From contig CBFFRQ010000057.1 in NCBI GenBank assembly GCA_965644315.1, forward strand, positions 372,001 through 436,000: a stretch of 64,000 bases of DNA, read 5' to 3'. The notes under the pieces were generated by a model, which ran no database searches, was not told the DNA's origin, and saw only the letters and a list, made by a program, of their open reading frames with translations. This document shows positions 1,033 through 61,736 of this stretch, in pieces. The position numbers and the translations under genes are program-made. Source of the stretch: Caecitellus pseudoparvulus. Lineage: Eukaryota > Protista > Bigyra: Bicosoecida. The stretch's first letter is position 1; each line of letters begins with the position of its first letter.

Positions 1033-1038
1033 AATGCA
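1033..1038 (+). terminator. AATGCA putative 3'-end signal (MRH gene)
   Basis: 7 nt after the TAA. Confidence 0.55.
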
Positions 1039-1087
1039 AGCTTGGTAGCGGTGCCCTTTGCTGGGGCTGAGCCAGTAAGTGGATGCT

Positions 1088-3698
1088 TCACACACCACCG
1101 ATCTGGGGCCGCACCGCACTCTTGCGCTTGGCCTGCCGCTGCAAGAACGCCGCAGCATCTTGAGAAGGCGAACGAGGCTTCCCATGTCCTGAAAACTGAT
1201 CCCTATTCTGGGTCGAGCTGCTTTCTGTGTCTGCGGGACTTGGCGTAGGATTTGCCTGGCCAGCAAAGCCGATCACCTTAAGCCGTCCAGCTTGCTGGCG
1301 AACTTGAGTCAAGGCTTGCTGCAGGCGGCTCTCAAGCCTCATGATATATGCCTCTCGGTCGTCGAGTTGTGAGCCGCTCTCCTTTGCACGCAGGGCTCGC
1401 GCCCTTCGCCCTGCAACTCTTGCCGCAATGCGCTCGCGCACCCCGGCTCGCGACGGCGTGGCAGATTGCGAGCTACCCTGCGCCGAGGCGGGTCGATGTT
1501 CACCGCACTCAGTTCGTTGTGATGTGTCTGTCGCTTGCACGCTCTCAGCGCTCTTACTGCGGGATGCGCCATCCAGCCACTCTCGACGACTTCTCAGAGC
1601 CTCCGACAAGTCTCGAATGGAGCGCACTTTCGGGATGCTAAACACTTGCTGAGCATCCATCACATGGGGTGAAGTTGTTCCAGGCTGTTGAGGTACCCCG
1701 CCGATCGTCTGGGCCTCTGTTTGCCCGCTGCCCTCCTCTTGCCAGGCGGGCCGGCAACCCCCTGAAAACACCCTTTCAAGACCCTTTGCCTGGACCTTGC
1801 TTCCCCTCGATGGACCATCCCGGGTGTGCACAAGAGCAGGGGTGTTTGCTTGGGAAGCAATCTGGAGGTCTGCAGGCTGCTTGCCACGGTATCCTTGCGC
1901 CTTGCGCAGTTGGATCTCGAGCGTCGCGGCCCGCTGCTCTGCCTCTGCCTGCTTCGCAGCAGCTTGGGCTGCTTCCACTGTGGCACGTGTGGCCACCTCC
2001 TTTTGCTCAGCCAGCTGCTCCTGCAATGACTGTATTGCTGAGCTTGATGAGTCCAACATGCTGGCGGCATCTGCCCTCTCAGCCGCTGATGCAGCGCGGA
2101 GCGCTTCCAGACCGCCCTGCATGTCCTTGATGTGCACGCGGGCATGGGCAAGCTCTTGCACAATTCTAGCGTTCTCCTCTTGCAGCGCAATAAAGGCAGC
2201 ATGTACTCCTGTCTTACCTGAAGGCTGCACGTGTGCAGAGGCTGATCCGGTTCGTGGCTGACTTGCTGGACCCCCTGCTTCAAGCACACTCACGTACTTC
2301 ATCAGCGCCGAGAGCTTCCGCCGGAGCTCATCTCTTGACAGCTCCTGGTTTACATGGATGGTGTTTCGGATGTTTTGTGCCCGGGCACCGAAGCGGAGGG
2401 TGGAAAGTGTCTCGTCTGCATCCGATGCTGATGGGCTAACAGTGAGGATCAAGTGCGTCTTGGTGTTGCCACCCAAGCTGTCCCTGAGCAGGTGCGTCAG
2501 CTTTGAATCTCGATACGGTACGTGGGTTCTACTGGTGTCTGTCAGAGCTGAGATGCAGTTTCCAAGCACGGACAGGCTCTTGTTGATGTTGGCAGCCTCC
2601 CGGAAAGCTGCGCCCGTTGCACCCGATCGCGTGACTCGCTCGGAGCCTGCGAGGTCCACCAAGCTCAGCGTGGACCTCACTGTGCTGCCATCTGGCTTCT
2701 CCTGCTGCAACATCAGCATGAACACTGCATGGGATCGACTGCTTTCGGAGTTCATGTGTGTGCTGCCCACGGCTCTCAGTCGTGTGCCTGCCCGAACCAC
2801 TTCTTGCACGCTGCGAGCATCCGGCGTGACAACCTGCCGAAGACCTTCCACCCACACTCCTCTGCGCCAGTCATCTCGAATGCGAAGAGTCGCTTTCGGG
2901 TCCCCCCCCAGCAGATCCCGAAAAGTCTCATTGTAGATTTCCAAGAAACCACACTTTACGCTGAATTCCGTGTCCACTTCGACCCTCGTGGAAGCAGGTG
3001 CTGAGCAGTCGTGGCTCGATGAGCTCGGTGAAATTGAACGAAAGAGATCGGCGGTGATGCGTGGAATCAGCCCCGATTCAGGGGTGAGAATTCCGTCGAA
3101 GTCACCGTACATCGTGTGCGTTTTGCCCGAGCCAGTTTGACCGTACGCGAAGATTGCGGCTGCGAAGTGGAGTCACAAAGTTTCAGAAAGTTGCCATGCG
3201 CCGCTTGAAGCCGCGGCGTGGGGTCGCACAATTGAACCCTGCCAGGACATCTTGCACTGCCTGCGGTGGTGAGGGCACAAGCAAACCGTCAACGCCAGCG
3301 TCCACTTCAGGGTGCTGCAACAGTCGCCTGGCAACATACCGATCGACCGACAGCCTCAAACACTGAATCTTGAGTCGAACTTGCTCCTCTGCGAGGTTGG
3401 TTTCGTGTTGGTGGGGTCAAAAGAGGCAGTGCAGTTTCGCGCTCAGCCGTTGCGTTGGCGTTTCCCGCTCAACAACCTTGCACGGGCAATGGCCTTACAG
3501 GACCTGAGTGAAGGAAAACGTAGCCTCAGAGCTGCCCTTGAAGCGAATGGCGTCTCCTTCCACCTGGATGCAGAGGTTGGATAAGGTTCCCTGCCGAAGT
3601 GGTAGTGGCCGGATGCGTGTGACCACGTTGACCTTGCACGAGTGGTGGCCAACTCGGCCATGTTCGCCAACGCCGCCGTCGGTGCTCATACTTGCCAT
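1088..3698 (-). CDS. Kinesin with N-terminal motor domain and coiled-coil stalk (kinesin-1-like)
   Basis: Spliced 5' exons give VNVVTRIRP...[32 protein letters not shown] (P-loop). The main exon has NSESSRSH (switch I), LVDLAGSE (switch II), HVPYRDSKLT and ETLSTLRFG. 3' end taken from the ORF stop. Confidence 0.93.
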
Positions 3699-3793
3699 GC
3701 AAGCCCATCAACTCAGCCATGGGCGCGTCGATGAGAGATGTGCAGTATGCTAGGTCCAGCCAAGCTCGCCGACGGTAGAATTGTGACGCACTG

Positions 3794-3799
3794 TGCATT
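3794..3799 (-). terminator. AATGCA putative 3'-end signal (ferlin)
   Basis: 27 nt after the stop on the minus strand. Confidence 0.55.
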
Positions 3800-10653: not shown

Positions 10654-11355
10654 ATGGCAGACGAGGCCGCCAGAAAAGTGCCGACGAATGTGGGTAACGT
10701 TATCGAAAGCGTGAGCCGCCCGGTGACCCGCAGAGCTCAGCGCATTGAACTCGCAGGCTGCGGGAGGGATAGCAGTAAGCGATGCAGATCTGAAAGCAGC
10801 ATTCCACTTCTTGGACTCCAAAGGCAAGGGCAAGATCACCATGGCGGACTTGAAACAGTGCGATCCTGAAACGGCTATGAAACGCTGGCGGGGCACCCAC
10901 TCTTTGTGTGCTGCGTTGATGCAGAAAGCTTGCCCCATTCTACCCTGACATGCCAGTGAAGGAGTATGCTTTCCTCATGGGTGACTCGAAGAGCCTCTCC
11001 TGTGCGGCAATTGGCGCGGGTGCGCTGCGAGGCAAACTATGCACTCGACGCGCCGCCATGCACAGTGCACGACTTGAAGGAGCTCCTCGCTGACAATGAG
11101 ATCACGGGATTCGACCCTGTCGCAGAGGCATTCAAGGTGTACGACCCAGAAGGCACAGGGTTCGCTGACACAGACATCATGAGGCAGGTGTTCACGGGGT
11201 TGGGATACACCGACCTTAGCGACGAGGACCTGGACATCCTTGTGGAGGCAGCTGACAAGGATGGCGATGGGTTAGTGAGCTTGGAGGACTTCCGCAGCAT
11301 GGTGTATGCGGCAGGCAGCACTGACCCTGCGAAAGGCACGGCTGCCGGCCAATGA
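10654..11355 (+). CDS. EF-hand Ca2+-binding protein (calmodulin/centrin-like), about 3 introns
   Basis: AAFHFLDSKGKGKITMADLK, AFKVYDPEGTG and ADKDGDGLVSLEDF EF loops across exons. Confidence 0.8.
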
Positions 11356-17600: not shown

Positions 17601-20479
17601 TGCACATGACAGAGAAGGCCGCTGCGGGGGGGGCCTGCATTGGCGTGGCACGGCCAGACTTCCCCTTCCGTAGTCGCAACGTGGGGGCCTTCGCAGGCTC
17701 GTGGGGCTGGTCCTCATCTGGCACTAAGGGCAATGGGCAGGGCGCCTTCATCGCGTATGGCGAGCGGTTCGAAGCAGGGGACAAGGTGGGTGTAGAGCTG
17801 GACTGTGATGAGGGTACCCTGCGCTTCCACAAGAACGGTGTGGACCAAGGCATCGCCTTTGCAACTGGGCTGAAGGGCGTGCCCCTGGTGCCAGCGGTGT
17901 GCTTGGGGGGCACACGCTCCCGCAAGTCAGCCCCCTCCACCTCTATCGCTGGCAACCACACACTGTGCCTGGTGCCCACTACCCTGGGCATTGCAGAGTA
18001 CCAGGCTGCTGCCGACTCTGCCTTGGACGCAGGCAGCTTGCGCACGATTGGGACGGGGGCGAAGGGGGAGGTGTCTGATGACGGGCAGCGGCTGTCTTTC
18101 TCCTGTGAAGGCTCAGCACCCACACATGACGCAGGCATCACAGTCAAGGCAGGCCCCAGTGTGCCATTTGCAGCGGAAGGCCCCACCACCAAGGTAAGGT
18201 GGACGTTTAGGGTGGACGAGCTGCACCTGCAGGAGCGCATCGCTGGCGAGGCCGTGCGAGACACCCTCATGGCCAGTGGTGCAGACACAGACGGTTGGAG
18301 GACTGCTGTCGCAGATTGGCTGTGGCAGATGCGGGGCGATGTGGGACACACCCTGTCGGCTGCGGCGCACAGTCGCATGCTTGGCGAGGAATCCGACGTG
18401 CCAGTCGTGGATGCTGCCGCCGAGGAAGGTGAGGCACGGGTGGCCCACGTTCACGCTGGCATCACCATCGGCCTGGCGTCCAGTGAATTCTTTGCTTCTG
18501 AAACACCAGCAGCGGGGGTGGGCTGTGACGCTTCTGGCCTGTCCGCAGGCATCACTTCCGTTGGGTTGGTTGTGCAAGGGGGCAAGGCGCACCCTGCACC
18601 TGGCTCCTCGACGCAGGGGGACTCCCTCTTGTGCCTGCCAGCACTCAGTCCTGGCGACGTCGTGTGCTTGACTGTCGCGCCGGGCGAAGCGGAGGATGGC
18701 AAGGCCGCCCACTCAGCGAGAGGACAGCAAGGCAGCTCAACCACCACTGGGCCTTCGACTGGCATGACCCCCATCAAACTCGCGCCCGCCCAAGCAGAGG
18801 CCTCGAAGCAGACCGGCCAAGGAGCAGGCACAGCCACCACTGCCCCAGCCAGCGACAAGACGGCGACGGCGCAGCCTGAGGCCGAGGCCCCTGCCCCCTG
18901 CATGCCCTACAGTGTCACGCTGTCGGTCAACGGCCAGGACCTTGGGCAGCCCCTCGGCCAAGCCCTGTTGCCGAGGATAGAAGCAGGGCAGGCCCTCGTG
19001 CCTGCACTGAGCATTGGCCACGGCGTGGCAAGCGCGGCTCTGACACTGCTCAGCACTGCACCGGCTTCGGACGCTGCTGTGCAGGCCAGCATGCAGCGAC
19101 GCAAACGCGAGGCCCACCTCTGCACCTTCCTCTCCCCACCTTCTGAGGTGCTAGGGCACAGCGTTTTGGAGGATGGCCAAGTTGCTACCTTTTCCCGGCG
19201 CTGGGCGACGGCTGCCATTGCAGCTGGGGTCCCGCTGAAGCTTGCCCAGCGCCGCACCCGCGCTCAGTGTGCGACTGCGGAACCAAGCCCCGTGCCAGAG
19301 ACCTCGCCTGTCTTCCCCACGCACGGCATCCCTCCCAACAGCGGCATCCATGCATTTCAACTGTACTGCAGCACGAAAGCCAGCGGCGGCGACATCGTCG
19401 TGGGTTTCGTGTCGGCAGCACCAGAGTCCCCCTTCAATTGGGCCTCGTGGCAGCTGGGCGCCAACTCCGCTTCCTGGGGTGTGGCTGGCACAGGCGCCAG
19501 GGGTGGTGGCTGGGTGAAGGGGGGTGAAGGGTGGCTGCCGTTCACCCCAGAGGCGGGGGACACGCCGCCCAAGCCGCTGTTCACCTCAGGCAGCATTGTG
19601 CAGTGGTTCGTTGACTCCGACCTGGACGAGGAGGGGCAGGCCAGATTCGGCGTGCGCGTGGATGGGCAGTTCACGGGACTGGCGCTGACCATCCCCAGCT
19701 GTGCGTTTCCCCTCGTGCCTGCCGTGTGTGGAGGTGGCGCCACCGCTGCCACTGCTCACCGAGTGCAGCTGCAGGAAGTGCCCCTCGCCGTGGACCGCGG
19801 ACAGGCATCCAAGCGCCTGCAGCTGTCGAAGAGAGACAGCATCATCACCTGCAAGTCCACCTGGGGCAGTGCTTTTGTCACACACAGCGGCATGTCCACC
19901 GGCAAGTATACATGGAGCTGGAAAGTGCTGCAGGGCTCAACATCGGGGGCTGTCTGTGTGGGTGTCGCAGACTTGAATCGTTTTCAAGTGACCTCGCGCA
20001 ATGTCGGTGCAGATAACCACAGCTGGGCGTACTCGTCAGCTGGCAAGCGCTCTGGCTCCAAGAGCGGCGAGTTCCAGTCCTATGGCTCCCCCTTCTCCAC
20101 TGGGGACATTGTGGGCGTGACCTTGGACTGTGACAAGAAGCAGCTGTCCTTCTCTTGCAACGGCACGTCTCACGGCGTGGCGGTGACGCGAGGCCTGAAC
20201 GCCTGCTCCTCTCTCGTGCCAGCCGCCTGCATCGGTAGCACCAAGCAGGGGGCTGTGCACTCGCTCGCGCTCCTGCCAGCCCTGACCGTGCAGCAGGTGC
20301 ACCACGCCCTGGCCTCGCCGTGGAGGTCCACGTGGTCCCCCTCTTTGGACCAGTCCAACAACACCCAGGCGTCAAGTCCAGGGGTTGAAGGCACCCCGGT
20401 GCCACTGAACCTCCCACCGGCAGCTCAGTTTGATGGTGGTGGCGCACCTTCCCAAGATGCAGCGGCCGTGGAGGGGTGA
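14624..20479 (+). CDS. Large protein: degenerate kinase-like N-terminus plus about six SPRY/B30.2 domains
   Basis: Three clear SPRY repeats (GKHSWAF...ICIGVA...WGYSSSG...GDVVGVYLDCDAGTLSFARNG...GVAF) and three degenerate ones. The N-terminal AWAAGCLIFHL...LLQPEADSRLP resembles a kinase C-lobe. Confidence 0.8.
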   Translation: MSEAVAAHARIVGLVPWGSRQAIVLSTGRPSSDAEEEGQPMCLVVPGLQEPPSSPGGALGEASLASEVTSVLGLDSSQARCLHCSQGLPVSAAFTVREAGNVRTALRAAQDVVQACLELQERGCVIIGAHAEQCTLSADGGVLLPEDCVVKAEGAEAKAWCLTTPAALTAIRQLVGGRLAQHAAPEVVSACDAGMETLPVAAQNAWAAGCLIFHLVDRTGVLPHPRVPGGVPFFSTESWGQATVPCTGDPGASLSSAAWTALRSVVQALLQPEADSRLPLQAAQAALGRVLEALSIHTTGDSALGAGAQLQVYVPEPAEDGSIELKAHSVPLPETGLLTSTESLAKAVHAHLQACGALSEDASAVHLSLKARGQSLPERVAYSFLDSAAASPTLAQTGLCLAPGQGTVRVLQEIIVTTSPSDLPPACVLAGASGQMLAKAHVLTNSRPGQDAAQRPTAPNKEACAGQGSPSPAAAAASAGAGDDAAATASPTPGEDLAKLVELATRRPTHEAAPTPSFVVSGFSQSERNPSVTVSDGCASSQQWGSAMCTVQGTERLDSGKHSWAFQVAQKAASGGICIGVATAEFDAPTKNLGPAQHTWGYSSSGKRSAGFPEFQPFAQGFSSGDVVGVYLDCDAGTLSFARNGVMLGVAFSDLKGKSVMPAVCMGGRASKSSHRPTVHKLRVLTSEEQYTKALQQARLRNPADLPSADFAWCGAGLPAARLPAPEAAPTFPVVCGGGWEAALPAPTLDSSTDLAVPAMVVPLQHPALSQACGVSPSGRYAFKFAVGTLDTDAEVWFCLVPHSALPDSDAVVAEAAPAHLPSPGLCQPGVWAVSSQGRVIAAGKVGETARFPALREGDCLGLEVGLPVEPDQGPAQGPTFEDLPTLAVTVNGAPAAELLPPLAQEAPQRSVFWAGALELGGLHPCVAVVEASTEASLAVVRTVEVPRMFSVQNANSHITAAGAGSSVTCASQWASAPIVHGGLTRGKHTWTLHMTEKAAAGGACIGVARPDFPFRSRNVGAFAGSWGWSSSGTKGNGQGAFIAYGERFEAGDKVGVELDCDEGTLRFHKNGVDQGIAFATGLKGVPLVPAVCLGGTRSRKSAPSTSIAGNHTLCLVPTTLGIAEYQAAADSALDAGSLRTIGTGAKGEVSDDGQRLSFSCEGSAPTHDAGITVKAGPSVPFAAEGPTTKVRWTFRVDELHLQERIAGEAVRDTLMASGADTDGWRTAVADWLWQMRGDVGHTLSAAAHSRMLGEESDVPVVDAAAEEGEARVAHVHAGITIGLASSEFFASETPAAGVGCDASGLSAGITSVGLVVQGGKAHPAPGSSTQGDSLLCLPALSPGDVVCLTVAPGEAEDGKAAHSARGQQGSSTTTGPSTGMTPIKLAPAQAEASKQTGQGAGTATTAPASDKTATAQPEAEAPAPCMPYSVTLSVNGQDLGQPLGQALLPRIEAGQALVPALSIGHGVASAALTLLSTAPASDAAVQASMQRRKREAHLCTFLSPPSEVLGHSVLEDGQVATFSRRWATAAIAAGVPLKLAQRRTRAQCATAEPSPVPETSPVFPTHGIPPNSGIHAFQLYCSTKASGGDIVVGFVSAAPESPFNWASWQLGANSASWGVAGTGARGGGWVKGGEGWLPFTPEAGDTPPKPLFTSGSIVQWFVDSDLDEEGQARFGVRVDGQFTGLALTIPSCAFPLVPAVCGGGATAATAHRVQLQEVPLAVDRGQASKRLQLSKRDSIITCKSTWGSAFVTHSGMSTGKYTWSWKVLQGSTSGAVCVGVADLNRFQVTSRNVGADNHSWAYSSAGKRSGSKSGEFQSYGSPFSTGDIVGVTLDCDKKQLSFSCNGTSHGVAVTRGLNACSSLVPAACIGSTKQGAVHSLALLPALTVQQVHHALASPWRSTWSPSLDQSNNTQASSPGVEGTPVPLNLPPAAQFDGGGAPSQDAAAVEG

Positions 20480-20486
20480 ATGCATT
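20479..20486. terminator. Palindromic AATGCATT, putative shared 3'-end signal (SPRY gene / FKBP15-like)
   Basis: GAATGCATTC overlaps the TGA of the + gene. The stops are 15 bp apart. Confidence 0.7.
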
Positions 20487-20494
20487 CCGCGGCG

Positions 20495-23347: not shown

Positions 23348-23353
23348 TGCATT
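23348..23353 (-). terminator. AATGCA putative 3'-end signal (DAP3)
   Basis: 24 nt after the stop. Confidence 0.55.
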
Positions 23354-25848: not shown

Positions 25849-26836
25849 ATGCCAGCTGCCAGCCCCGCACAGGGCGGGGGAGGAGGAGGCCTCGTTGGTA
25901 ACAAGGACAGTGTCACAGAAGGCGCAAGAGGACTCGTTTGTGGCCTGCTGTACGGCCTGGCCTCGCCGCTTGTGGGGTGCGTGGTGCTCTGGCGCAGCGA
26001 TTCCCCGCCCCCCGCACCGCTGCAGGGGCCCTGGCACGCACCGCCGCAGGCACCCTCTGGACACCATCAAAACCAAAATGCAAGCACAGGCGTCCTTCGC
26101 CCGTGCCGGAGCACTGCGCACTCTGCGGGAAACGCTTGCCAAGGAGGGTGCCCGGGGTCTGTACCGAGGCCTGCTGCCGCCGCTGTTCGGGTCCATGGTC
26201 TTCCGCTCCCTGCAGTTCAGCGCGTACACCTTCACCTACGCCGCAGTGCGCGACAACGAGGCCCTGTGCACGCCCCAGCCCTGGCTGGGGGGCATGCAGC
26301 TGCGAGTGCTGCTGGCTGCCACAGTCAGCTCCACTGTGCGCAGTGTGATCGAGACGCCCCTTGAGCACGTCAAGGTGCGCAAGCAGGTGGGGCAGCCGTG
26401 GATGCGCGCAGCGACGCCTGCACAGGCCATGCAGGCGCCTCTGCGCGAGGTGGCGCACATGTACTCTGGCTTCGGCGTGTGCTGGGCTCGCACCGTGGCG
26501 CTCATGGGCAGTTTCTTCGTCATGCTGGACACACTCGGGCGGGTGGCGCCGGGCCTCATCGCTGCAGGGCTGCCTGGTGCCTTCGTCAAGGGCGGCATCT
26601 GCGCCACCACGGCCTGGGCCATTTGCTGGCCCTTCGAACTGGCCAAGAGCCGGGTGCAGGCAGGGGCGGCGTCGGGGTCGTGGGCGGCGGAGCTGCGGCA
26701 GGTTCTGCGCAGCGAGGGTGTTCGTGGAGTGTACAGGGGCTTCGGGCCGGGTGCGGCACGTTCCATTTTCGCGAACGGAACCAGCATGCTGGCATTTACA
26801 GCCTGCCAGGCGTGTTTTCAAGGCATGGATACTTGA
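25849..26836 (+). CDS. Mitochondrial carrier family (SLC25) protein
   Basis: Three Px[DE]xx[KR]x[KR] motifs (PLDTIKTK, PLEHVKVR, PFELAKSR) with EGARGLYRG and EGVRGVYRG. One intron near 25977-26050. Confidence 0.92.
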
Positions 26837-26881
26837 TCATGCAGATGCGTGCACCCAGCTGCGAAGCATGGCGACAAATTC

Positions 26882-26887
26882 AATGCA
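26882..26887 (+). terminator. AATGCA putative 3'-end signal (mitochondrial carrier)
   Basis: 45 nt after the stop. Confidence 0.55.
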
Positions 26888-26989: not shown

Positions 26990-28310
26990 ATGATCCAGTC
27001 AGCGCTGCGGAGAGGGCTCAGCACGCCCCGCACGCCGAAGCATGCGCGTTTCCTGCACGTCTTGCCCAACGTAGACGCTGTGCGAGAGTGGGTGGCGCAC
27101 AGGCCTGGCAGTGTGGGCTTTGTGCCGACGATGGGCGCCCTGCACGGGGGCCACATGCAGCTGGCAGCTGAGGTGCGGAAATCGTTTGCGACCAGCGCAG
27201 CGCTGGCTTCTCCCCCTCTTCGTGCACTGCCGGGCGCTCCCCACGCAGTCGAAGCGCACGTGCGATGCAACCATCGCAAGCATCTTTGTGAATTCCACCC
27301 AATTCGCGGCACACGAAGACCTGGAGAGCTACCCAGCCCTGCGTCCAGAAGTGAGAGCCGCAGACCTTGACCTCCTTCGTCAAGCGGGTGTAGACGCAGT
27401 GTACATCCCCGAGGACCCTTGGGAGGTGTACCCGACATGGCCACCTTTCAAGAGCTATGTGGTCCCTGAGGGCGGCTCGGCTGCCAATGAAGGAGCTGCC
27501 AGGCCTCACTTTTTCCGCGGCGTGGCCACGGTCGTGACGAAGCTCTTCAACATCGTCTCGCCCACGCACGCGTTCTTCGGGGCCAAGGACGCGTACCAGT
27601 GCATCGTCGTTAAGGCCTTGGTGCGGGACTTGAACATGTCTCGGCCTCGGCACATAGTCGTCGTCCCAACGCAGCGGGCGGAGGATGGCTTGCCCGACAG
27701 TTCACGAAACGTGTACCTCACAGCTCCACAGCGCGCTGCAGCGCCGATGCTGTACCGCATGCTAGCAGGGTTGCAGAGTGCGTTGGAAGATGCCCCGCGG
27801 GGCGGCAACGGCATGCCCAGTGTGTCGCTGCTGCATGACTCGCTGCTGCCAGCTGCGCACGCTGCGTTGCAGAATTGCCTGCGGCAGCACCACCCTGACG
27901 TGACTGCTTCCTTGGAGTACCTGTCCCTCATGGACGCTGCCAGTGGCCTGGACGTTACGCCCACATGTGCCGAGACCTGGCAGAACGAGGCAGCGCTGGA
28001 GCGTTCCGCCGCTCTGTGGGGCTTCAGTTGCAGTGCCCAGCCTGCCGCCGGCGAGAGATGGGAGGTTCCCCTGCACCGAGCTATGGACACGTCAAAGCCA
28101 CCACCAGGGTTGGAACGTGTGCACAGCAGCTGTTCAGCCACGCCAAGCAGGGCATTTATCTCCCGCTCCCGCCGTGAGGCTGTGCTGCCTGCGCCGCTGG
28201 TGTTGTCAGCCGCCCTGGCGTTTCAACCGAGCAAAGGCCAGGGTGGCTTCGTGCGCGTGCTAGACAACGTGATGGTGGGCGGCGCCCTGCAGTGCTTGGG
28301 CGGACCATGA
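26990..28310 (+). CDS. panC: Pantoate--beta-alanine ligase (pantothenate synthetase)
   Basis: GFVPTMGALHGGH (HIGH motif), SIFVNSTQF, RPHFFRGVATVVTKLFNIV, FFGAKDAYQ, DGLPDSSRNVYL and VRVLDN. Intron about 27173-27248. Confidence 0.93.
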
Positions 28311-28317
28311 ATGCATT
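28310..28317. terminator. Palindromic AATGCATT, putative shared 3'-end signal (panC / AsnRS)
   Basis: Overlaps the panC TGA. The stops are 19 bp apart. Confidence 0.7.
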
Positions 28318-30073: not shown

Positions 30074-30079
30074 TGCATT
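30074..30079 (-). terminator. AATGCA putative 3'-end signal (CTL)
   Basis: 64 nt after the stop. Confidence 0.5.
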
Positions 30080-34242: not shown

Positions 34243-34250
34243 AATGCATT
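34243..34250. terminator. Palindromic AATGCATT, putative shared 3'-end signal (AVT / mucolipin)
   Basis: GAATGCATTC overlaps the mucolipin TGA on the minus strand. The stops are 31 bp apart. Confidence 0.7.
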
Positions 34251-37604: not shown

Positions 37605-38984
37605 TCAGGTGCAGGGTGCCGTGCATGCGGCATTTGGCGCGCCCTCGGTTGAGTGCGAGAGCGCGTCGCGCTCAGCTTGACGCGGCACTGTTGCTGCTTG
37701 GTTCAAGACGGCACCCTGCGCTTGCTGCGATGTTCGAAACCAAGTCTGCGCAGCTGTCAGATGTCTAGGCAGCACAGGAGGGGGTTCAATAGGCCACTCG
37801 CCATCGCCAGAGTCAGTGGGACCGCTGCCTGGAGCGGCGCCTGCCAGCGCCTCCTGCAGGGGAAGCCAGGCAGCGTAGCGGACCATGGCCGCCACATCGG
37901 CTCCAGAGCACCCTTGCGTAGCCGTGGCCAGGGCACGTGCATGCTCCGGCGTGATGCAGTGGGGCGTGTTCCCAGCTTGGAGGCTTGCAGTGACAATGCT
38001 CGCTCGCTGGTCAGTGTCTGGAAGTGGCACGGCCGCCACGCGCATGCGGCGCAGAACGGCAGGGTCAATGGCCTCTGGTCGATTGGTAGCGGCGAGGAGC
38101 ACCGTGCGGTGCCCTCCTTGCTGGCCTACAGCTGCAGCCAGCGTGTCCAGTTCCAGGAGAAGCTGGCAGACCAGCCTGGCAGGTGCGACGGCGTCGCAGG
38201 CGCTTCGACGCGGGGCTATGCTGTCCAGCTCGTCAATGCACAGGACGCTGCAGGACGACGTGGCTGCAGCTGCCCGTGCATGGGCAAATGCCCGGCTGAG
38301 GCTGCCCTCGCTACCACCCGTGTACCTGGACAGGACATCTGAGGGGCTCAGGAAGATGCAGGCAGCGCCCACAGCCTCAGCCGCTGCCTGCATGAGGGAA
38401 GACTTGCCCGTGCCAGGAGGCCCAGTCAAGAGCAGTGCTGTGGGCGCTTGGCGGGCGCCACGTAGCCACTCTGGTGGCAGCAGGAGGGGCAGTAGCAGCG
38501 TGTGCTGCAGGGCAGCTTTCGCGTCCTGTGCCCCTGCAATGTGCTTCAGGGCAAGGTGGAAGGCGTGCGCAGTGACTTTGGAAAGTGGCGAACGCGCGCA
38601 TGCTGCCTTGATGCTTGCCGCTTTGGGGTCTCGCTGCAGCTGTGCCGTCTGCGCAGTGTCTTTGGTGCTGGCTACCGAGTCCACCGGCTCAAGGGCAAGG
38701 TCTCCCTGCTTGAAATGCTGGGGGCGAAGGATGCGTGCTGAGGAAGGTGAGCTTGGTGTGTCCCGGCTTTGGGCTCCGCAAGGGCTGTTGATGCTGCTTG
38801 TGCGTGCGGTTTTTGCAGACGGCTCCTGCGTTGCACGTCGCGCAACACATGCCCGCTTCACTGCCCCAGAGCCGCAGCACACCAATGTGCCTGAGTGCAA
38901 TGCATGCACCTGGTGGCCTTTCAAAGCCTCAGCATTGCTGCTGGCTTGGTTTGTGCCGGTCAGACGTGGACGGGCGGGCTGCAT
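37605..38984 (-). CDS. AAA+ ATPase (meiotic clade: katanin/spastin/fidgetin/VPS4-like); start uncertain
   Basis: IAGAQDAKAAL, GPPGTGKS (Walker A), IDELDSI (Walker B) and AATNRPEAIDPAVLRR (SRH). Confidence 0.85.
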   Translation of the reverse strand: MQPARPRLTGTNQASSNAEALKGHQVHALHSGTLVCCGSGAVKRACVARRATQEPSAKTARTSSINSPCGAQSRDTPSSPSSARILRPQHFKQGDLALEPVDSVASTKDTAQTAQLQRDPKAASIKAACARSPLSKVTAHAFHLALKHIAGAQDAKAALQHTLLLPLLLPPEWLRGARQAPTALLLTGPPGTGKSSLMQAAAEAVGAACIFLSPSDVLSRYTGGSEGSLSRAFAHARAAAATSSCSVLCIDELDSIAPRRSACDAVAPARLVCQLLLELDTLAAAVGQQGGHRTVLLAATNRPEAIDPAVLRRMRVAAVPLPDTDQRASIVTASLQAGNTPHCITPEHARALATATQGCSGADVAAMVRYAAWLPLQEALAGAAPGSGPTDSGDGEWPIEPPPVLPRHLTAAQTWFRTSQQAQGAVLNQAATVPRQAERDALSHSTEGAPNAACTAPCT

Positions 38985-38985
38985 T
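38980..38985 (-). terminator. AATGCA putative 3'-end signal (NAF1)
   Basis: 52 nt after the stop. Confidence 0.5.
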
Positions 38986-42037: not shown

Positions 42038-42038
42038 G

Positions 42039-42046
42039 AATGCATT
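42039..42046. terminator. Palindromic AATGCATT, putative shared 3'-end signal (orphan / SDHC)
   Basis: Occupies 8 of the 14 bp between the two stop codons. Confidence 0.7.
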
Positions 42047-42051
42047 TGCGG

Positions 42052-42671
42052 TTAGAACTCCACGACGGCAGCGAGCAGTGTGGCGGTGGCGGTGCCCGCC
42101 AGCAGCGCATAGGCGCCCTGCTCCACCTCCTTGATCTCATGCCCCTTCACCTGGTCCCACATCTGCGCGCAGGGAAACGATTCGTGTGGGCCCCTGCCTG
42201 GCGCGCCTTCAAGCGGGGGGGCGTGCGCGAGGGCGTACCAGATGACGCATGCCATGGCCGAAATGGTAGGCGAGGGCACCGCCCACCGCGGCGCGCACCA
42301 AGGGAGCCACGCCAGCCTCGTGCAGGGCGGTGGTCATCTCCAGAATGCTGGTACCTGTGCCTGCCAAGCCCAGGGACACTGCTGCCAGGCCTGTGAGGCG
42401 GGGTGGCGGCTGATGTGCGGGGGCAGCCGGCCTGCGGAAATCCGCGTCACGCACCGACTGTCATGCCCACGCCAGTGCCACGGAAAGCGATGGAGGTCAT
42501 AGCGTTGAGGGGCAGGCGGTAAATGGTCAAATGGGGCGACAGGGGGCGCTGCACTTCCCCAGCCTTGGTGGCCAGCATGGCTCGGGCCGCCACGGGCGTA
42601 GCGGCTGCCACTGGCGCCTGCACAGCAGACAGGCGGGCAGCCATGCCGGCAGTAGCGCGGGCGAGGGCCAT
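42052..42671 (-). CDS. SDHC: Succinate dehydrogenase cytochrome b560 subunit (SDH3), 2 introns
   Basis: RPLSPHLTIYRLPLNAMTSIAFRGTG and ALAYHFGHGMRHL|MWD. Presequence MALARATAGMAARL. Confidence 0.93.
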
Positions 42672-42750
42672 GTCGTCGAGGGATTCGCGCGTGTGGGAGC
42701 ACAGGTGCTTCGTGTCTGTTGGTAGCGGCCGGGTTGCCGTTCGTTGGTTG

Positions 42751-42756
42751 TGCATT
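42751..42756 (-). terminator. AATGCA putative 3'-end signal (SDHD)
   Basis: 31 nt after the stop. Confidence 0.55.
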
Positions 42757-42787
42757 TCGTTTTGGTAGTGCCCCGGGCTGAGGCCGC

Positions 42788-43479
42788 TCACGCGTCGGCC
42801 TCCTCGGCAGCCTTGGCCTTGGGGGGCGCCACCCACAGGCTCTTCACGCCGGCTGACAGCCCGACGTCGGCGAAGTTGAGGCGGGCCAGGGCAGCGGCGG
42901 TGAGGACAGTGACGCCTGCCAGGGCCATAAGGGCCATGCGCTGCTGCTGGGGCTCCCAGATGTAGTCCACGATGACGCTGCGCATGCCGATGTGTGTGTG
43001 CAGGGGGATGGCGACGTTCAGCACCATGTCTGCGACGCTGGTCATGGGCGCGCCGAACAAGAGAGCCACTGGCACACCGGCGGCCAGTGCGTAAGACGAG
43101 TAGTGGTACACCTCCTTCACTGTGCTGGCCTTCACGGAGCCGGGGATGAGAGCTGCAGGGGGGAGGACAATGCAGAGGTGAGGGGGCACAAATAGGTGTG
43201 CAGTCGGGGGCCGGCCAGAGTCGTCCTGGGCAGGCCTGTCACCGTGCGTGGTGCATGTGGGCACCTGCGGAACTTACCGTCGGCCTGGCTGTAGACACCC
43301 TGCGACGTAGCCATGCCGCGCGCAGCAACTGCGAAACGCACAGGGACCCCAAGGGGGGATGAGCGCGGATAGCACACAGAGGGGGGGAGCGGGCGCTGGT
43401 TCGCACTGTGCAGGGAGGGCAGGGCTGGGCGGCTGCTCAGCGCCAGGTGAGCTGCTGATGTGGCAGCCTTTCGCATCAT
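42788..43479 (-). CDS. SDHD: Succinate dehydrogenase small membrane anchor (SDH4/CybS), spliced
   Basis: YHYSSYALAAGVPVAL...DMVLNVAIPLHTHIGMRSVIVDYI. Presequence MMRKAATSAAHL|...AARGMATS. Confidence 0.9.
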
Positions 43480-43834
43480 GGTGACCGGTGGGTGGCGTGT
43501 GCGCTGGTTGGTGGGCGACCATAGCACTGTGACGTAGGAGGGGGCAAATGCTGGAGGCGTGAGAGGGTTTGGCCTTGCGCGAGGGCTGCGCTGCGCAGGG
43601 TCGGAGTGTGGGGGGGGTAGAGAGCACAGCCCAGCAGCGCGAAGGGCTCCAGGTGCAGTCACGCGTCAAAACGCATGCACATATCTGCCCGCACCCCGCC
43701 CTGTACTTCACTCCCACTCGCCGTGGTCGTGCGCTACGTCGCCTTGGCTCCGGTGCCTTTCAAGAGCAGGCTTGGCGGCTGTTGCCAGGCACAATTCCGC
43801 ACTGCTGCAGAGGCAAGGCGCGGCACAAGCAGCC

Positions 43835-44237
43835 ATGTCCACCGTGCCCACGCCCGATGGGCCAGTGTTCACGTCCAGCTTCATGAATGGGTTCTTCAGC
43901 AAGGAGCGGCGCCTGGCGCAGATGGGCAGCCACCACGAGGCAGACCTGCAGGCTCGGGAAGCAACACACATCGTGCACTACCGCAACGCGATCGAGAAGT
44001 GCGTGGGGCGCAGCCGCGCAGCGTGGCCAGATGCCCATGCACCCCCTCCCTGCCCCGCCCCACCGCAGCAAGAGGTTGAAGGCGCACCCTGGCCACACCA
44101 CTCGGCGCCCCGTCAGCGTCGTGCGGCGTGACCCGCTGCTGCGCGATGGACTGGGACACTACGCTGGGTGGAAGTGGCACCAGGCCTACGTGCAGGGCAC
44201 CCTGTCCAGGTTCATGCAGGGCAAGCCCATCTTGTGA
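43835..44237 (+). CDS. Orphan 110-aa protein, one intron (43999-44068)
   Basis: ATG in gccATG context. Removing a 70-nt gtgcgt...ccgcag intron gives a 333-nt CDS: MSTVPTPDGPVFTSSFMNGFFSKERRLAQMGSHHEADLQAREATHIVHYRNAIENKRLKAHPGHTTRRPVSVVRRDPLLRDGLGHYAGWKWHQAYVQGTLSRFMQGKPIL. G/C-ending codons dominate, and AATGCA follows at 44273. Confidence 0.7.
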
Positions 44238-44272
44238 AGGGGTGCTTGCCCTGCCGCCGCCGCAGCAGGCTG

Positions 44273-44280
44273 AATGCATT
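44273..44280. terminator. Palindromic AATGCATT, putative shared 3'-end signal (110-aa orphan / SDHB)
   Basis: Centred in the 75-bp gap between the stops. Confidence 0.7.
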
Positions 44281-44312
44281 GACTCGCAGCAGGCGAACTG
44301 CAGCGCCCCGCC

Positions 44313-45398
44313 TCAGTGCTTGGCTTCGTACGCCTTGGGCATCTCCTTGATGAGCTTGGCGATGGCCCGGGCAGGGTTGAGGCCCTTGGGGCACACGCGC
44401 GTGCAGTTCATGATCTGGTGGCACCGGTACAGCTTGAACTCGTCATCCAGCGCAGCCAGGCGCTTGGACGTGGCGGCGTCACGGCTGTCAGCCACCCACC
44501 GGTACGCCTGCATGAGCACTGCAGGGCCCAGGTACTTGCCTGAGGAGCCGTTCCACCAGTAGGAGGGGCAGGAGGTGGAGCAGCAGGCGCAGAGGATGCA
44601 CTCGTACATGCCGTCCAGCTTCTTGCGGTCTGCGGAGCTCTGCAGGTGCTCCAGGTTGGGACTGCTCTCCTCCTTCGCCTGCAGCCACGGCTCAATGCTC
44701 TTGTACTGGTCGTAGAAGACGTTGAGGTCGGGGACGAGGTCCTTGATGACGTACATGTGCGGCAGGGGGTACACCTTGTGCGCCTCCTTGCTGGCGGTGT
44801 CGATGTAGGTCAGGCACGCCAAGCCGTTCACGCCGTCGATGTTCATGGCGCAGCTGCCGCAGATGCCCTCACGGCAGGAACTGTGAAGGAGGGGGGCGTC
44901 GGGGCATGTGGCACCAGCGCTGGGACGCCAGGTGAAGTGAGGCGCAACGCCGTGTGAAGCGCGCACGCACCGCCGGAAGGTCAGGGTGGGGTCCTGTTCG
45001 TTCTTGATCTTGATGAGGGCATCCAGCAGCATGGGGCCACATCTGCAGTCGGAGGGGGAGGGGTCGGCGCAGCATCGTGCAGTGGTGCTGGGTGGTGTTT
45101 CGCCGCACCACCAGCGTGACGCACTCGTCCATGTTCACGGGGTAGGACGCAGTGTAAGGCTTCTGGCCAGGCACATCAGGGTCCCATCGGTAGATCTTGA
45201 AGAACTTGATGTTGTCTCCCTGTGCAAGGCGATTCCAAGCCGTGTGCGGGACCCTGCGAAGCTGGGCGGTACACCCGCACTCACAGATGGTGCTGATGCC
45301 TTCAGGCTGCCTGCCGTGCCGGACAGAGCGCGGGCAGCAGTGGCAGTCGCCGTGGGCGCTGCGCGGCGCACCGCCGCAGTTGTAGCTGCAGCAAGCAT
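44313..45398 (-). CDS. SDHB: Succinate dehydrogenase iron-sulfur subunit (SDH2), about 3 introns
   Basis: [16 protein letters not shown]|[27 protein letters not shown] and [17 protein letters not shown]. Presequence [14 protein letters not shown]. Confidence 0.97.
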
Positions 45399-45500
45399 GG
45401 TGGGCGTCGTGGGGTTCGCTCCGTGTGCTGTGATGAAGCACGGTGTGTGCAGGGTGCTTGGTTTGCGGATTTTGCTGGCTGCTCACTTCTGCACGCAGCT

Positions 45501-45506
45501 TGCATT
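45501..45506 (-). terminator. AATGCA putative 3'-end signal (1190-aa hypothetical)
   Basis: 5 nt after the TAG. Confidence 0.55.
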
Positions 45507-45511
45507 GACGC

Positions 45512-48500
45512 CTACTCCCCAAGGTTGGACAGGCACGACAGCACATCGGATGCGAGGTCAAAGAGGGAAAACACAGCATGCACGCCGAGCGCGACAGACC
45601 CCGACTTGGGCTCCGGCGCCTGCTCTGTCGGCGCTGCCCGGCCCCACCCGCGGGTCGGGGAGGGGAGGTGAGGGGGCACGAGGTCTCCGCCCTGCCCCGA
45701 GCTGCTGGGCATGGGTGTGAACACCGTCGCGGTGGACGCCTGCAGGGGGTTCTCAGGGGTCAACGCCACCTCCACATCATGGCTCAGCGCATTGAAGGGG
45801 TGCCCACCTCCAAGCTGCCCGGGCAGCTGCACCACCTGCACCACCAGCGCCAGCGCTGCCAGCACATGCAAGTCGGAGCCATCCAAGTACTTCACCAGGA
45901 CGCTTTGCAGCTTGGACGCCAGGGCGGCCATGCGTCGGCGCTGCTCCGCAGACGTCTGCTCTGCCTCGCCCCCTTCCTGGTCAGCCTCCTGCGGCGTGGA
46001 GGCAGACGCGCCTTCTTCGGCTGCCGCCGTGACGGCCACCTCCGCCACCTCGGACAGGATGCGCCGCGCGTAGCGGCTGAAGGTGGACAGGAATCCCTCC
46101 ACCTTGATGCCTTGCACATCTGCAGCCTGGTACAGCCAGGGGCAGGCGCGCAGGGTGAGGGCCGCGACGCCGACGTCGGCTGGCGCGACCTGCTGCCCGT
46201 ACGGCGTTCCTGCCGCGCTCAGCAGCGTCACATCTGCGACGTTCACGACGCCACCCACACAACCTGCTGCTGCCAGTGCAGCAGTGTCCAGCAGCATGCC
46301 CACCCAGGCTTGCCTGACATCCACCGTGAGGGCAGTGTCCCATGAGTCCACTCTGCCCGCACCCTCCTCCTCTTCCCCGGCCTCGCTCCGCGCGGGCACC
46401 TGCAGGGACAATTGCAGAGCACCAGTGTCCTCTGCCCTCTGCAGAGTCGACCGCACTTGAGGCCCTGGGTCCATGACAGTCTCCAGCACGTTCACAGGCA
46501 GGTGCATGCCAGGCGGCAATTCCGCCTGCACCTGCGGCACTTGCAGCTGCAACTTGGGGCCACTTGCGCCCGCCCGCGCCCCAGAAAGCGTGAGGGACAC
46601 CGCTGCAGCCAGTTTGCGCAGGATTCGCGGCAGTGCCAGCAGCCCCCGGGCGGCGCCCGTGACGGTGCGCTGCACCATGAGCCGCGACGTCTCCAAATCC
46701 ACAACGCGGGCTGAGCTGGCGCCGGCCTCGGCGCTGCCGCCCGCGCTGGCGGAGGAGATCGTGCTGCCGCCACCAGCTGCTGCTGGGCGTCCAGAGCGAA
46801 TGACTTCAGCGCCAGCGCCGTCCCCGGTCCCGCCCATGCCCGCTGCATCGGAGAAGGGGTTGGGGCTGACAGCGGCAGTGCCCTGCGGGGAGGTTGGCGT
46901 GCCTTCGTGTGATTCACCACTGGACCCCCGTCGCAGGCGTGAGGCCAGCCCCGACACCTTGGCCTTGGCCTTGGCCAGCATCCCCTGTGGCGCCTCTGCA
47001 GTGCCGGCGCCAGGCGAAGGGGGGGATGCCGCCTCAGCCGCGCTGGCCGCTGGACTGCTGACGGGTGTGGCAGGAGCAGGCCGCCCTCCGCCCGACACCT
47101 CTCGCGCGCCTTGTAGCAAGGACTGTGAGCCCCGCAGCTCGTCCAGGTCCGCTTCCATCTCCTGCGCGGTGCGCTGGCGCGTGTGCGGTCCCGCGCCGCC
47201 TGCCAGAGCTGCCTTGGCTGCATCGATGCGCCGCAGTGCCAAATCGCGAGCACAGCGCAGGAGGGGCGCCAGGCGCAGTCGCCCCTCCAAGCTGTGCAAC
47301 TGCACAGAAAAGGCGACGGGCTTCCCAGCCAGGGCGGCGGCCCTGCGGAACATCACCCGCACATCAAAGCGCCCCGCGTGGGCTGCTGCTTGGGTGTGGC
47401 GCATGGAAGCCACGCCCCCCGCCGCCGCTCCCTGCCCCGCCCGCTGCATGACCAACACCTGCAGCGCATCGTCCACCAGTTGCTGCCACTGCTGGCACAC
47501 CCACTTCCAGTGCATGATCTTGGCTGCAACGCTGCCAGGCAGCTGCTCCAGGGTCACTGCAGCGGCCGGCTCCGCCCCTGCCGCCTCCTCCTCCAGCTCC
47601 GGGAACAGCGTCAGGATCCAAGGCCGGTGCAGGCGCACATAGGTCAGGATGTCGTGCAGACATGCCAGGGGCGTCTGGCCAGCTTGCGACTGGGCCCGGG
47701 CGAGGGTGCCGGCTTGGTCAGGCGTGAGGCCCAGCCACACCGCGCCAGTGAGCGCATGCGCGTCCGGCCCCAGGGTGTCGGCGGGCAGTACTCGGCTCTG
47801 CTCGTGGACCAGTGTGGGCGCCTCACCCGCCCAATCCTGCAGTGGCTGGGTGTGTGGTTGACTCGCTCGCTGCCGCAGTGCGGCCAGCAGTGGCGCCGGC
47901 ACATGCTCGCCTGAGGACACGCCCAGCAGGGCTGCCAGCAGGCGGTGACTCCACTTGCCCCCAGGTGACTCCACTGGACTCAACGTGGGAGGCAAGGCGG
48001 GGAAGAGCGGGGGTGGGCGGGGCGGCACCTGCGCCTCCGGCGTGATCCCCCGCAGCTCCCCCCGTAACACGGCGAAGGGGATGCCAGCCAGGTCCACCGT
48101 GGCGCTGAGGCTGCCGCGCTGCTGCCCAGCGCAGAGCATGTCGCCCAACTCCGGCGGCGCAGCCCGCAGGGCAGCCGCCTTGATCTGGCTGGGCAGGAAG
48201 GTGTTCACGAGCCAGCGGGTGAGGGCGGAGGGGATGGGCAGGAGCCCGCCCCCCTTCTGGCGAGTGTGCAGTTCACTGAGGCTGAAGGCGAAGGCGGGCC
48301 CCACGACCCACCGCCCATACCGCCCGCACACAGTGCTGCCAGTGCCGTCACTGGCCGCGGGGGGTGCCGGCGTGTCGCCCCCTGACCCACGCTCCCCCCG
48401 CAGCAGCGCCTCCACGTGCTGGTGGGGGGTGTACTGCAGGGGCAGCGTCAGGGACAAGGTGGCAGTGACTTGCAGCGTGTCCACGTCCAGATCCGGCACG

Positions 48501-49392: not shown

Positions 49393-52300
49393 ATGGCGCC
49401 CAGGAACCCGCAGGCAGTCGTAGCCGATGTCATGCACCATATGCAAAGTAATCCCCTCACGTACGGCCCACTCCTTGTCGTCACTCTGGCGATGGTCATG
49501 ATGGAGAGCGGGCGGGCCTACCTTTGGTACTGGCTGTTGGCCCTGATTATGTGGGCGGCAAACTCGGTTTCAGCGTTGACAGGCTGCGCGACGGCGTTCG
49601 TGGAGATGCCCGTGCATGAGCTGGGCTGGGACTGGATGGCGGCAGGCGTGGCCGGCTGCGTCGTCATTCTGGCCCTGCTGGCCTTCAGCAGCAGCTGGGT
49701 CCTGAGTCGCTCGGCCAAGTGGATGGTCAGTCACTTCGCCGCTCAATGGCACCCTTCCCTGCGAGCATTGACTGTGAGTGACCAGTCTGGCGGCGACGCG
49801 CAGTCAATTTCCGCACACAACTCTCCCGTGCCACCCATCGCAGGAGGAAGTTGTGAAGGGGGGGCTGAGCAAGACACTCACCGGATGCGCAGCCCCATTC
49901 TCGCTGATGTTCATGGTCATCCTCATTGACTGTGCCTTCGAATTCTCGGGGCCCAGCCTTCGCATCCTGCCGTCTGAAGCACCAGCTGAGTTCGCGTGGG
50001 GCGAGGAATCCGCTGGCTTGGTGCAGCAGCCCATGCCCTCCAGCGCCGGGTGGGCATTCTTCTTGCACTACTCAGTATTCACCACTCTCTTCTTCGTCTG
50101 CGTCAACACCACCGTGATGCTTGTCAGCTCCCAGCTGCTGGCCGTGTCCACGGAGCATCAGCGGGCCCTGCGGCTGCTGCTGGTGTGGGTCATCGGCATG
50201 ACTCGGGTGTACCCTGCCCTGGCGGCCAACGGTGTGGACCTAGCCCAGGGCGTGGGCTTCATGCTGTACTACTTCGTCCCCGTCTTCCTCGTCGGGAGCC
50301 TGGACACCGTCGTCGCCGACTTCGCCTGTGACGCCGCTTGCGAGCGCGTGCTGGCCACGGGCATCCTGGCCCCCTCGCTCTCCACAGTGGACGAGCTGGG
50401 AGGCAACCACGGCGTGAGTGCTTCCAAGCAGGCGCGCAAGACAGTGGACACGCTCGCGTCTCTGCAGGCCGCCGTGCAAGCCATGCTGGTGGCGCTCGTG
50501 CGCTGCTTCTTCTGCATCATTGCCGTCATCACGGGCAGCGGCGCTGGGCTGAACATGCTGCTGCGGCACCAAGTCAGTGGTATGACGGCAGCCGCCCGAG
50601 AGGGCTCCTTGGCCCTGCCTCAGCCCATGGAGCCTGGCGACCTGCCCTGGTGGCCGCCCGCTGGCATGCTGTCCCTGCAGTTTAACCGGGCGCCTTCTTC
50701 GTCTCTGGCCTTGTCCATCATCTTCCAGGTCCTCATCCTTGTGTGCATGTGTGTCATTGCGTTCCGCTTCGTCGTTGGCATCTCATGGCTGTACACCCTT
50801 TGCAGCTTGCCCTGGGTCACGAGCACGCACACGGGGCGCCTGCGCCTGAACAAGTCCCTCTTCCAGAACAGCCACCTCTCCAGCTTCGCAAGCATCTTCG
50901 CTGACGCGCGCCACCTCATGAAACAGTTTCAGCACATGTCTTCATTCAGGCTGGGGAGTGCCATCTTTTCTCTGGCAGACAAGGCCGACAAGCAGCTGGA
51001 GCAGCTGCAGCATGTTGGCCACTCGGCAGTGGAGCATTTCGGCTTCATCTTGCCCATGACGCTGACCAACACCAGCTCCATGTCTTTGAAGCTCCCGACT
51101 CTGCGCCTCAGCGTGCCGTTTGCGTTCAAGGAGCCGAACAAGAGCACTTCCTACACCTCCATCGCTCGCGTCGTCGTTTCCGTCCGCCGAAGGGGGGCGA
51201 CGGACCAGGGACCGTCCCTCACCCTGCCTGTGAGGCAGAATGTGAATGTGGACATCCACATCAAAGCCAGCATTTTCTTCGTCCGCCTGCTGGAGCTGGC
51301 GCTGGCGCTCATGGGCAACTCCACCTGGATCTCCAGGCTCATCAAGAGTGTCCCCGGCAGCGACCTCAAGAATAGAACTGTGGCGGGACTTGCCGCCAGG
51401 GTCAGGGTGACCCGAGACACTGCGCCCATGCGGTGTATACCGGCTTCCAAGCTCCCTGACGGGTACATGGAGCTGCTGGAGCTGAGGCATGGAAGGGCGG
51501 TGTCCAGCATCCTGCACGCCAGCTCTGCTTCGGGTAAGGAGCAGAGCATGCTCACCCTCACGCGCCAGGTGTTGGCGCCCATGATTTCCACCATCCGCTC
51601 GCACTTGACTTCTGGCCACAGCAAGAAGCGGGTGGAGTCCCTGCATCGCACCATTGTGGCGTTGCTCAGCCGAGTGTCGGAGCGGCGCACAACTCAAGGC
51701 GACCTCTCTCGCCGGCTGATGGAGGCAAAGGTGCAGCTTCAGGGAGCGCACTACAACACAGAGGTGCTGATGGTCATGCTGGAGCGCTGTGCTGAGGTGC
51801 TGCAGCAGCCGACTCCGGAGGCACGCAGCCAGAAAGCCAGGGAGCTGCTGGGCGCTGGCCTTGCCCGCGATGGCGAGGATTTGGGCCAGGCCGCCGCAGA
51901 CGAAGGTGCCAACATGGCAACACGGTTCAGCTGGATGTTCCAGGAGGGCATGGAGCCTGCAGACGAGCGCGAGCTATCCAGTGCTGAAGTGGAGCAGGAG
52001 CAGGCTGGGACAGCCTCTGCACAGGCCGGGCTGTCTCAAGCCGAGCAGCTCAAGGCGTCTGCTGGGCTCCACTCGTTTCACGACTTGCCAGAGGCAGAAA
52101 TTGTGCACAGGCTGCGAGACCTCAGCATCTTCCGGTGCATAATCCGACTGGTGTACGGCTTCATGGGGCTGGCCACGGCGCAGGATGACCTGACGCTCAG
52201 CACGCAGCACCTGGAGGATGGGGAGACCAAGGCCACAGTGAAGGAAATCCTGAAGCAGCTGGCACAGCACAGACGGCAGTTCATGGAGAGCTGCTCTGTG

Positions 52301-61641: not shown

Positions 61642-61730
61642 TGCAGGTGGGTCGCCGTGCCACGAAAAGGTCGCGCTTCAAGTGCCACGAGACGAGGCAG
61701 TGCCACCAACACGCGAGTAGCCACAGGTAC

Positions 61731-61736
61731 TGCATT
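61731..61736 (-). terminator. AATGCA putative 3'-end signal (Sel1 gene)
   Basis: 34 nt after the stop. Confidence 0.55.

Follow-up and report, generated by a model that had tools for sequence, protein, structure and literature searches.

Gene ends in the window

The window, that is, the whole stretch of 64,000 nucleotides analysed here, contains 26 gene ends defined from Pfam-supported models: those of 25 curated genes, 21 of which have the motif described below, and that of an EF-hand gene (10966-11355). An earlier note on this DNA proposed that the hexamer AATGCA, which it reported after most stop codons, is the cleavage/polyadenylation signal of this lineage. We find a sense-strand AATGCA at 2-67 nt from the first base of the stop codon in 21 of the 26 genes. 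All 16 positions listed in that note are occupied by AATGCA or its reverse complement, on the strand claimed, and its five palindromes are copies of AATGCATT, which together serve ten genes. The sites at gene ends, together with one inside an ORF (26077), are as follows, by position in the window:

1033..1038 (+): AATGCA of an ATG27-like gene, 10 nt from its stop at 1023-1025
3794..3799 (-): AATGCA, 30 nt from the stop of a ferlin-like C2 gene
11376..11381 (-): AATGCA, 19 nt from the stop of Vps52; the convergent EF-hand gene has GGTGCATT here
20479..20486 (both strands): palindrome AATGCATT, for an SPRY gene (TGA overlapped) and a facing gene ending at 20495
23348..23353 (-): AATGCA, 27 nt from the DAP3 stop
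26077..26082 (+): AATGCA, the sole sense site inside an ORF of the window (mitochondrial carrier)
26877..26887 (+): AATTCA overlapping AATGCA (26882-26887), 43 and 48 nt from the stop of the mitochondrial carrier
28310..28317 (both strands): palindrome common to pantoate ligase (TGA overlapped) and AsnRS
30074..30079 (-): AATGCA, 67 nt from the choline-transporter stop
34243..34250 (both strands): palindrome common to an amino-acid transporter and a polycystin channel (TGA of the channel overlapped)
38980..38985 (-): AATGCA, 55 nt from the stop of a Gar1/Naf1-like gene
42039..42046 (both strands): palindrome serving a spliced - gene with its stop at 42052-42054 and a + gene whose end is at 42037
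42751..42756 (-): AATGCA, 34 nt from the stop of an SDHD-like (CybS) gene
44273..44280 (both strands): palindrome common to a spliced + gene and SDHB
45501..45506 (-): AATGCA, 8 nt from the stop of a gene of 1216 codons
55313..55318 (+): AATGCA, 54 nt from the stop of a gene of 1827 codons and within the final codons of the rhomboid gene that faces it (TATGCATT)
61731..61736 (-): AATGCA, 37 nt from the stop of a Sel1-repeat gene; the convergent ankyrin gene has ACTGCATT here

It is not certain where the + gene that ends near 44237 has its stop, as a spliced reading stops at 44131. The SDHD-like gene (42788-43560) and SDHB (44313-45457), both on the - strand, place two succinate dehydrogenase subunits about 1 kb apart.

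AATAAA is found at no gene end of the window, as the earlier note had said, and occurs only at 2189 (+) and 37246 (-). Over the whole window AATGCA is not enriched (37 copies, with 32.5 +/- 5 expected), and the effect is thus positional and strand-specific: at the whole-window rate of the hexamer (2% per 70 nt), the probability of finding it at 21 or more of 25 gene ends is ~1e-32. Sixteen AATGCA sites lie away from gene ends, and 15 of them are antisense to the gene that contains them; the sense site at 26077 is either a counter-example or a site silenced by its context.

The five genes without the hexamer are those already named as exceptions, encoding kinesin, EF-hand, AAA, rhomboid and ankyrin proteins. 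Four of the five converge on a partner that has AATGCA (1033, 11376, 55313 and 61731), and their sense strands read NNTGCATT. Because these exceptions face the AATGCA of the partner, the sense strand reads NNUGCAUU, which may act as a weak, half-palindromic signal for them; outside the window, NNUGCAUU occurs at only four of 20 negative ends.

Enrichment, avoidance and palindromes in the host genome and its relatives

The sample outside the window comprises the ends of 89 automatically called ORFs in ~250 kb of the host genome, taken from the kinase and CCCH loci, two 40-kb tiles and a metagenomic contig of 21 kb that belongs to the same species; the statistics as a whole rest on ~310 kb of sequence and one genome-wide palindrome count. 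In the 100 nt that follow the stops, and relative to a second-order model of these regions, AATGCA is the top hexamer, at 43 of the 89 ends with 6.5 expected (log10 p -24.7), and the strand-specific 3' enrichment on which the earlier proposal depended is therefore present outside the window. Two variants are likewise enriched there, namely AATTCA (15, with 2.7 expected) and AATACA (5, with 0.7 expected), and U3 and A6 are invariant among the enriched hexamers. No enrichment was found at these 89 ends for AATCCA or for single changes at positions 1, 2, 3, 5 and 6. Since AATTCA and AATACA are enriched but AATCCA is not, the consensus is AAU[G>U>A]CA (AAUDCA).

At 68 of the 89 outside ends AATDCA lies within 150 nt of the stop; the remaining quarter or so of these automatically called ends includes some internal exons and false ORFs. 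AATGCA alone is present at ~50-80% of gene ends, and the distance between motif and stop has a median of 30 nt and a range of 2-176 nt. AATAAA was found at none of the 89 ends, which places them outside the canonical AWUAAA class. No auxiliary motif stands out upstream or downstream of the hexamer, and the lack of T- or GT-rich enrichment after it, beyond the two Ts of the palindrome, separates these ends from those with a Blastocystis-type downstream GU-rich element (TGTTTGTT-like). We considered whether an avoidance of T at position -1 belongs to the signal and rejected this, because in the window only 3% of AA dinucleotides follow a T.

Coding sequences avoid the motif in one direction only. 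In 185 kb of coding sequence AATGCA occurs three times on the sense strand, compared with 18.0 +/- 3.5 in synonymous shuffles (p 2e-5), whereas on the antisense strand 32 copies are seen with 25.2 expected, so that it is not avoided there. This asymmetry fits a co-transcriptional RNA signal rather than a DNA element. Other features of coding sequence were recorded in the window and the sampled loci: hexamers that contain GGCC, CCGG, CCGCGG, GTCGAC or GCTAAG are strongly depleted relative to synonymous shuffles, and the observed/expected ratios of CpG (0.75), TpA (0.32) and CpA (1.49) may reflect methylation-driven decay.

AATGCA followed by TT is self-complementary, and hence one 8-bp site could end two convergent genes. 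Genome-wide there are 1011 copies of AATGCATT where 92-171 are expected, and ~38% of the AATGCA sites at gene ends extend into this palindrome. Dual-use stops of the form TGAATGCA are found in three genes of the window and five others.

In OST48 searches, the named matches are stramenopiles. A quick OST48 tree unites the host with two metagenomic relatives (support 100) in a clade that is sister to EukProt GECG01 (support 84), probably the Halocafeteria transcriptome, and stands outside oomycetes and ochrophytes. We regard the host as a bicosoecid-like stramenopile; it occurs in marine metatranscriptomes. Its assembly (30.6 Mb, 215 contigs) is intron-poor and gene-dense, and its G+C content is 63%, compared with ~70% in Cafeteria burkhardae and 46.8% in Halocafeteria (10.64898/2026.06.25.734631).

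Syntenic metagenomic loci of relatives, with 56-66% protein identity, provided 18 further gene ends, about a third of which have the motif. At orthologous ends, DAP3 is followed by AATTCA or AATACA, the carrier by AATGCA, and OST48 by AATGCA or AATACA; two of the sites in relatives overlap the stop codon, and none of the relatives' AsnRS/PanC ends has the motif. The signal looks common to a small clade and looser in the relatives. Gene order is shared as well, in that relatives L047, L048, L049 and L206 have the AsnRS/pantoate ligase pair, followed in the last three by fused PanB-PanE, the mitochondrial carrier and DAP3 in the order of the window. Protein P0006 was set aside as a bacterial AsnRS. 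Protein P0121, which falls into one 90% cluster with the AsnRS of the window, is deposited under the name Symbiodinium sp. KB8, a sign that the assembly in question may be contaminated with the host flagellate.

RNA contigs and the cleavage/polyadenylation machinery

For positions 40100-46000 of the window, assembled Logan contigs from four runs were compared with the genome. These contigs show GT-AG-type splicing and thus derive from RNA. Contigs that pass a motif, from two runs of separate studies and representing four genes, stop 6, 7, 6, 9, 7 and 2 nt after AATGCA, although contigs cannot define true RNA ends. At the 42039 palindrome, contigs from the - gene stop at 42035 and 42034, and the SDHD-like contig ends at 42749; at the 44273 palindrome, the contig of the + transcript ends at 44285 and the SDHB contigs end at 44269 and 44266, in each case shortly beyond the hexamer of the strand concerned. 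For the + gene near 44237, the RNA contig ends 7 nt past the motif. Several contigs stop short of the motif, and among the contig pieces listed none runs beyond +9 and none has a poly(A) junction or a loose end with a run of A. The earlier note expected a fixed spacing of 10-30 nt; the contigs agree with a near-constant spacing but not with that length, as they give ~6-9 nt, a lower bound taken from contig ends only.

The same contigs bear on transcript starts. Four spliced ones (42746-42756, 43561, 43678 and 45457) begin at (G)CAC after an A-rich AAAC, a possible initiator. Contigs of the gene after the SDHD-like gene begin at 42746-42753, on top of the AATGCA of the upstream gene, and here a 3'-end signal and the next start overlap.

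The host CPSF30 gene lies on contig C24 (~50070-51900) and has two exons, which encode ZF2-ZF3-ZF4 followed by YTH and DCD domains. It was missed by the Pfam models zf-CCCH and zf-CCCH_3 and by searches with the canonical ZF2 DNA pattern, and was found with a profile built from metagenomic CPSF30s; tandem arrays with a 24-nt period (C18:1136520-1139160 and C30:215420-215640) also fitted the CPSF30 pattern and were dismissed as chance matches. For both CPSF30 and WDR33, the spliced models were searched one exon at a time. The top PDB matches of CPSF30 are human CPSF4 and yeast Yth1, and a homologue search with its exon 2 returned the same species only. The YTH match is weak (27 bits), and the ZF-YTH-DCD layout is that of the diatom cluster.

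In the human complex, stacking contacts join A1 to F84, A2 to H70 with K77/K78, A4 to F112 and A5 to F98, R73 binds the U3-A4 phosphate, and F43 and F153 of WDR33 clamp the U3-A6 pair (PMC6859858; PMC12421377); AAUGAA and AAUACA barely bind this complex (PMC6859858). The host CPSF30 keeps F84 and F112. Its ZF2 has the changes H70F, R73N, K77M and K78N, though A1-A2 of the hexamer are unchanged, and its ZF3 is three residues shorter and has L in place of F98, with no aromatic residue at that position. Of 145 representative CPSF30s, 140 have F or Y at position 98 and none has L, and H70F, R73N and F98L are absent from the whole set; since this comparison set is biased to canonical proteins and is without stramenopiles, the ZF3 changes may be stramenopile-wide. 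In the hexamer only the bases read by ZF3 have changed, with U3/A6 and A1/A2 kept, a pattern that would match the loss of F98.

WDR33 is encoded on contig C13 (~670170-671800; E 4e-86 to human WDR33). F153 is kept within an FxFETL segment, and a phenylalanine in the N-terminal exon is probably F43, as matched by eye rather than by a BLAST alignment. The gene was located by means of a WDR33 from a contaminated metagenome-assembled genome (MAG), and nine pattern candidates were discarded as other proteins or wrong frames. The MAG contig in question, CAZYYU010000076.1, is classed as gammaproteobacterial in GTDB and has an intron-containing eukaryotic WDR33, and thus represents eukaryotic contamination. 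Fip1 and three CPSF_A genes are also encoded in the host genome; from the latter, CPSF160 is probably present, SF3B3 and DDB1 being the alternative identities. The earlier note had proposed altered RNA recognition by CPSF30 and WDR33. The residue changes lie in CPSF30, in which base-contact residues including F98 differ, rather than in the clamp of WDR33, of which F153 and probably F43 are kept.

Interpretation and comparison with known signals

The enrichment after stop codons, the avoidance in sense coding sequence and the contig ends support the proposal that AAUGCA is a cleavage/polyadenylation signal, with the amendment that the signal is the consensus AAU[G>U>A]CA and not one hexamer. 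We consider it probable (about 0.87) that AAUDCA is a lineage-specific poly(A) signal read by CPSF, the reader being predicted. By analogy with the human structure, a CPSF160-WDR33-CPSF30-Fip1 complex would read AAUGCA on the nascent RNA: A1-A2 would be bound by ZF2 (F84 kept, H70 changed to F), U3 and A6 would pair and be clamped by F43/F153 of WDR33, and the remodelled ZF3 (F112 kept, F98L, three residues shorter) would accept G, U or A at position 4 and need C at position 5. Cleavage would follow ~7-15 nt downstream of the hexamer. At dual-use stops, TGA or TAA would supply the first letters of the signal, and the mRNAs of a convergent pair ending at one palindrome would overlap by ~17-20 nt; short overlapping 3' ends are thus predicted at palindromic sites. 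The more specific proposition, in which the ZF3 pocket has been rewired to D4-C5, giving a strict C-containing signal without a UAA core, and palindromes end ~1000 convergent gene pairs, has in our estimate slightly better than even odds.

The signal could be the same and its reader another, either an RNA-binding protein or an m6A/YTH system as in Toxoplasma and plants, with the CPSF30 fingers degenerate. We think this unlikely, while noting that ZF2 and ZF3 have both diverged, also at R73 and K77/K78, residues with RNA contacts in the human protein, that CPSF30 here has the ZF-YTH-DCD form, and that 3'-end processing coupled to YTH is known (PMC8313237). However, A1, A2, U3 and A6 of AAUAAA are kept and variation is confined to the positions read by ZF3; F84, F112, F153 and probably F43 are kept as well, and the YTH domain scores weakly. 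The m6A motif RRACH has an AC core, which AAUGCA lacks. A palindromic site acting at the DNA level between packed genes, as a Pol II roadblock, terminator or insulator, would agree with the ~38% of gene-end AATGCA sites that are AATGCATT, with the four of five window exceptions that face a partner's site, and with the one site that falls at the start of the gene after it. Such an element would not be purged from sense coding sequence yet be free on the antisense strand; moreover, most sites are non-palindromic and follow the direction of the gene, and on either strand, taken by itself, RNA contigs end 6-9 nt beyond the motif, all of which makes this reading very improbable.

We give marginally less weight still to an element of 3'-UTR stability, translation or localisation, with cleavage directed by something nearby. 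A sense-strand UTR motif at a variable distance from the stop (2-176 nt) is what it would predict, but AATGCA is near-universal over unrelated genes and avoided in coding sequence, RNA contigs end immediately after it, and no other motif stands out. An artefact of CpA/TpG excess through CpG decay in a GC-rich genome draws on the ratios of CpA (1.49), TpG (1.44) and CpG (0.75) and on the unenriched whole-window count. It is nevertheless close to negligible: the enrichment was measured against a second-order model of the same 3' windows, CATGCA and other near-neighbours are not enriched after stops, and in sense coding sequence AATGCA is depleted and CATGCA in excess.

If the ZF3 pocket has indeed been rewired, it would represent a switch of specificity that arose naturally and sets the ZF3 half of the recognition code apart. 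The changed signal and the changed ZF3 together offer a direct natural test both of the structural model of recognition and of the way in which evolution can replace a signal that every mRNA carries. In practice, the consensus could serve gene-end annotation and the design of expression cassettes for bicosoecid-like grazers. Poly(A) signals are known for few protists only. Our literature search, beyond whose reach most subscription papers lay, did not find AAUGCA as a dominant signal, only as a minor variant in Aspergillus.

In Aspergillus oryzae, AAUGCA and AAUACA are among the over-represented minor hexamers of the AAUGAA region, with 25 and 29 occurrences in ~1043 transcripts, and the top hexamer reaches 6% (PMC3111234). 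No signal is dominant there, whereas AAUGCA is present at ~50-80% of ends here. The AAUAAA/AUUAAA signal read by mPSF (PMC6859858, PMC12421377) resembles AAUDCA in A1-A2-U3, A6, the machinery and the sense 3' position; it differs in having A-A and not D-C at positions 4-5. In the host, moreover, F98 is lost and ZF3 is shorter, the apparent spacing is shorter (6-9 nt or more), and no U/GU-rich auxiliary element is seen. The zinc fingers and YTH domain recall CPSF30L/CPSF4-YTH of plants, apicomplexans and diatoms, with DCD as in the diatom cluster, but relative to those (PMC8313237) the fingers of the host have diverged at RNA contacts and its YTH match is weak.

Giardia, a protist with the signal WGURAA/AGURAA, likewise combines a compact genome with a hexamer that is derived and specific to its lineage, a short spacing (8-9 nt) and dual-use stops, and has no known auxiliary element (PMC11529991, PMC9014877). 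The two lineages are unrelated, and the change is at position 2 (ZF2) in Giardia but at positions 4-5 (ZF3), with C, in the host, in which the palindrome is also common to convergent genes. Other signals that depart from AAUAAA are UGUAA in Chlamydomonas and Ostreococcus, UAA in diatoms, the nearest studied stramenopiles, and UAAA/GUAA in Cyanidioschyzon (PMC6413133). TGTAA is present at only one of the 89 outside ends, which do not belong to the algal UGUAA/diatom UAA class, and the UAA proposed as a conserved core of those signals (PMC6413133) has no counterpart in AAUGCA. In the surveys consulted, the well-defined signals, whether hexamers or pentamers, retain UAA or URAA as their core (PMC11529991, PMC6413133); the dominant AAUGCA departs from this pattern at exactly two bases, both read by ZF3 of CPSF30, and the host ZF3 is changed at the matching residue.
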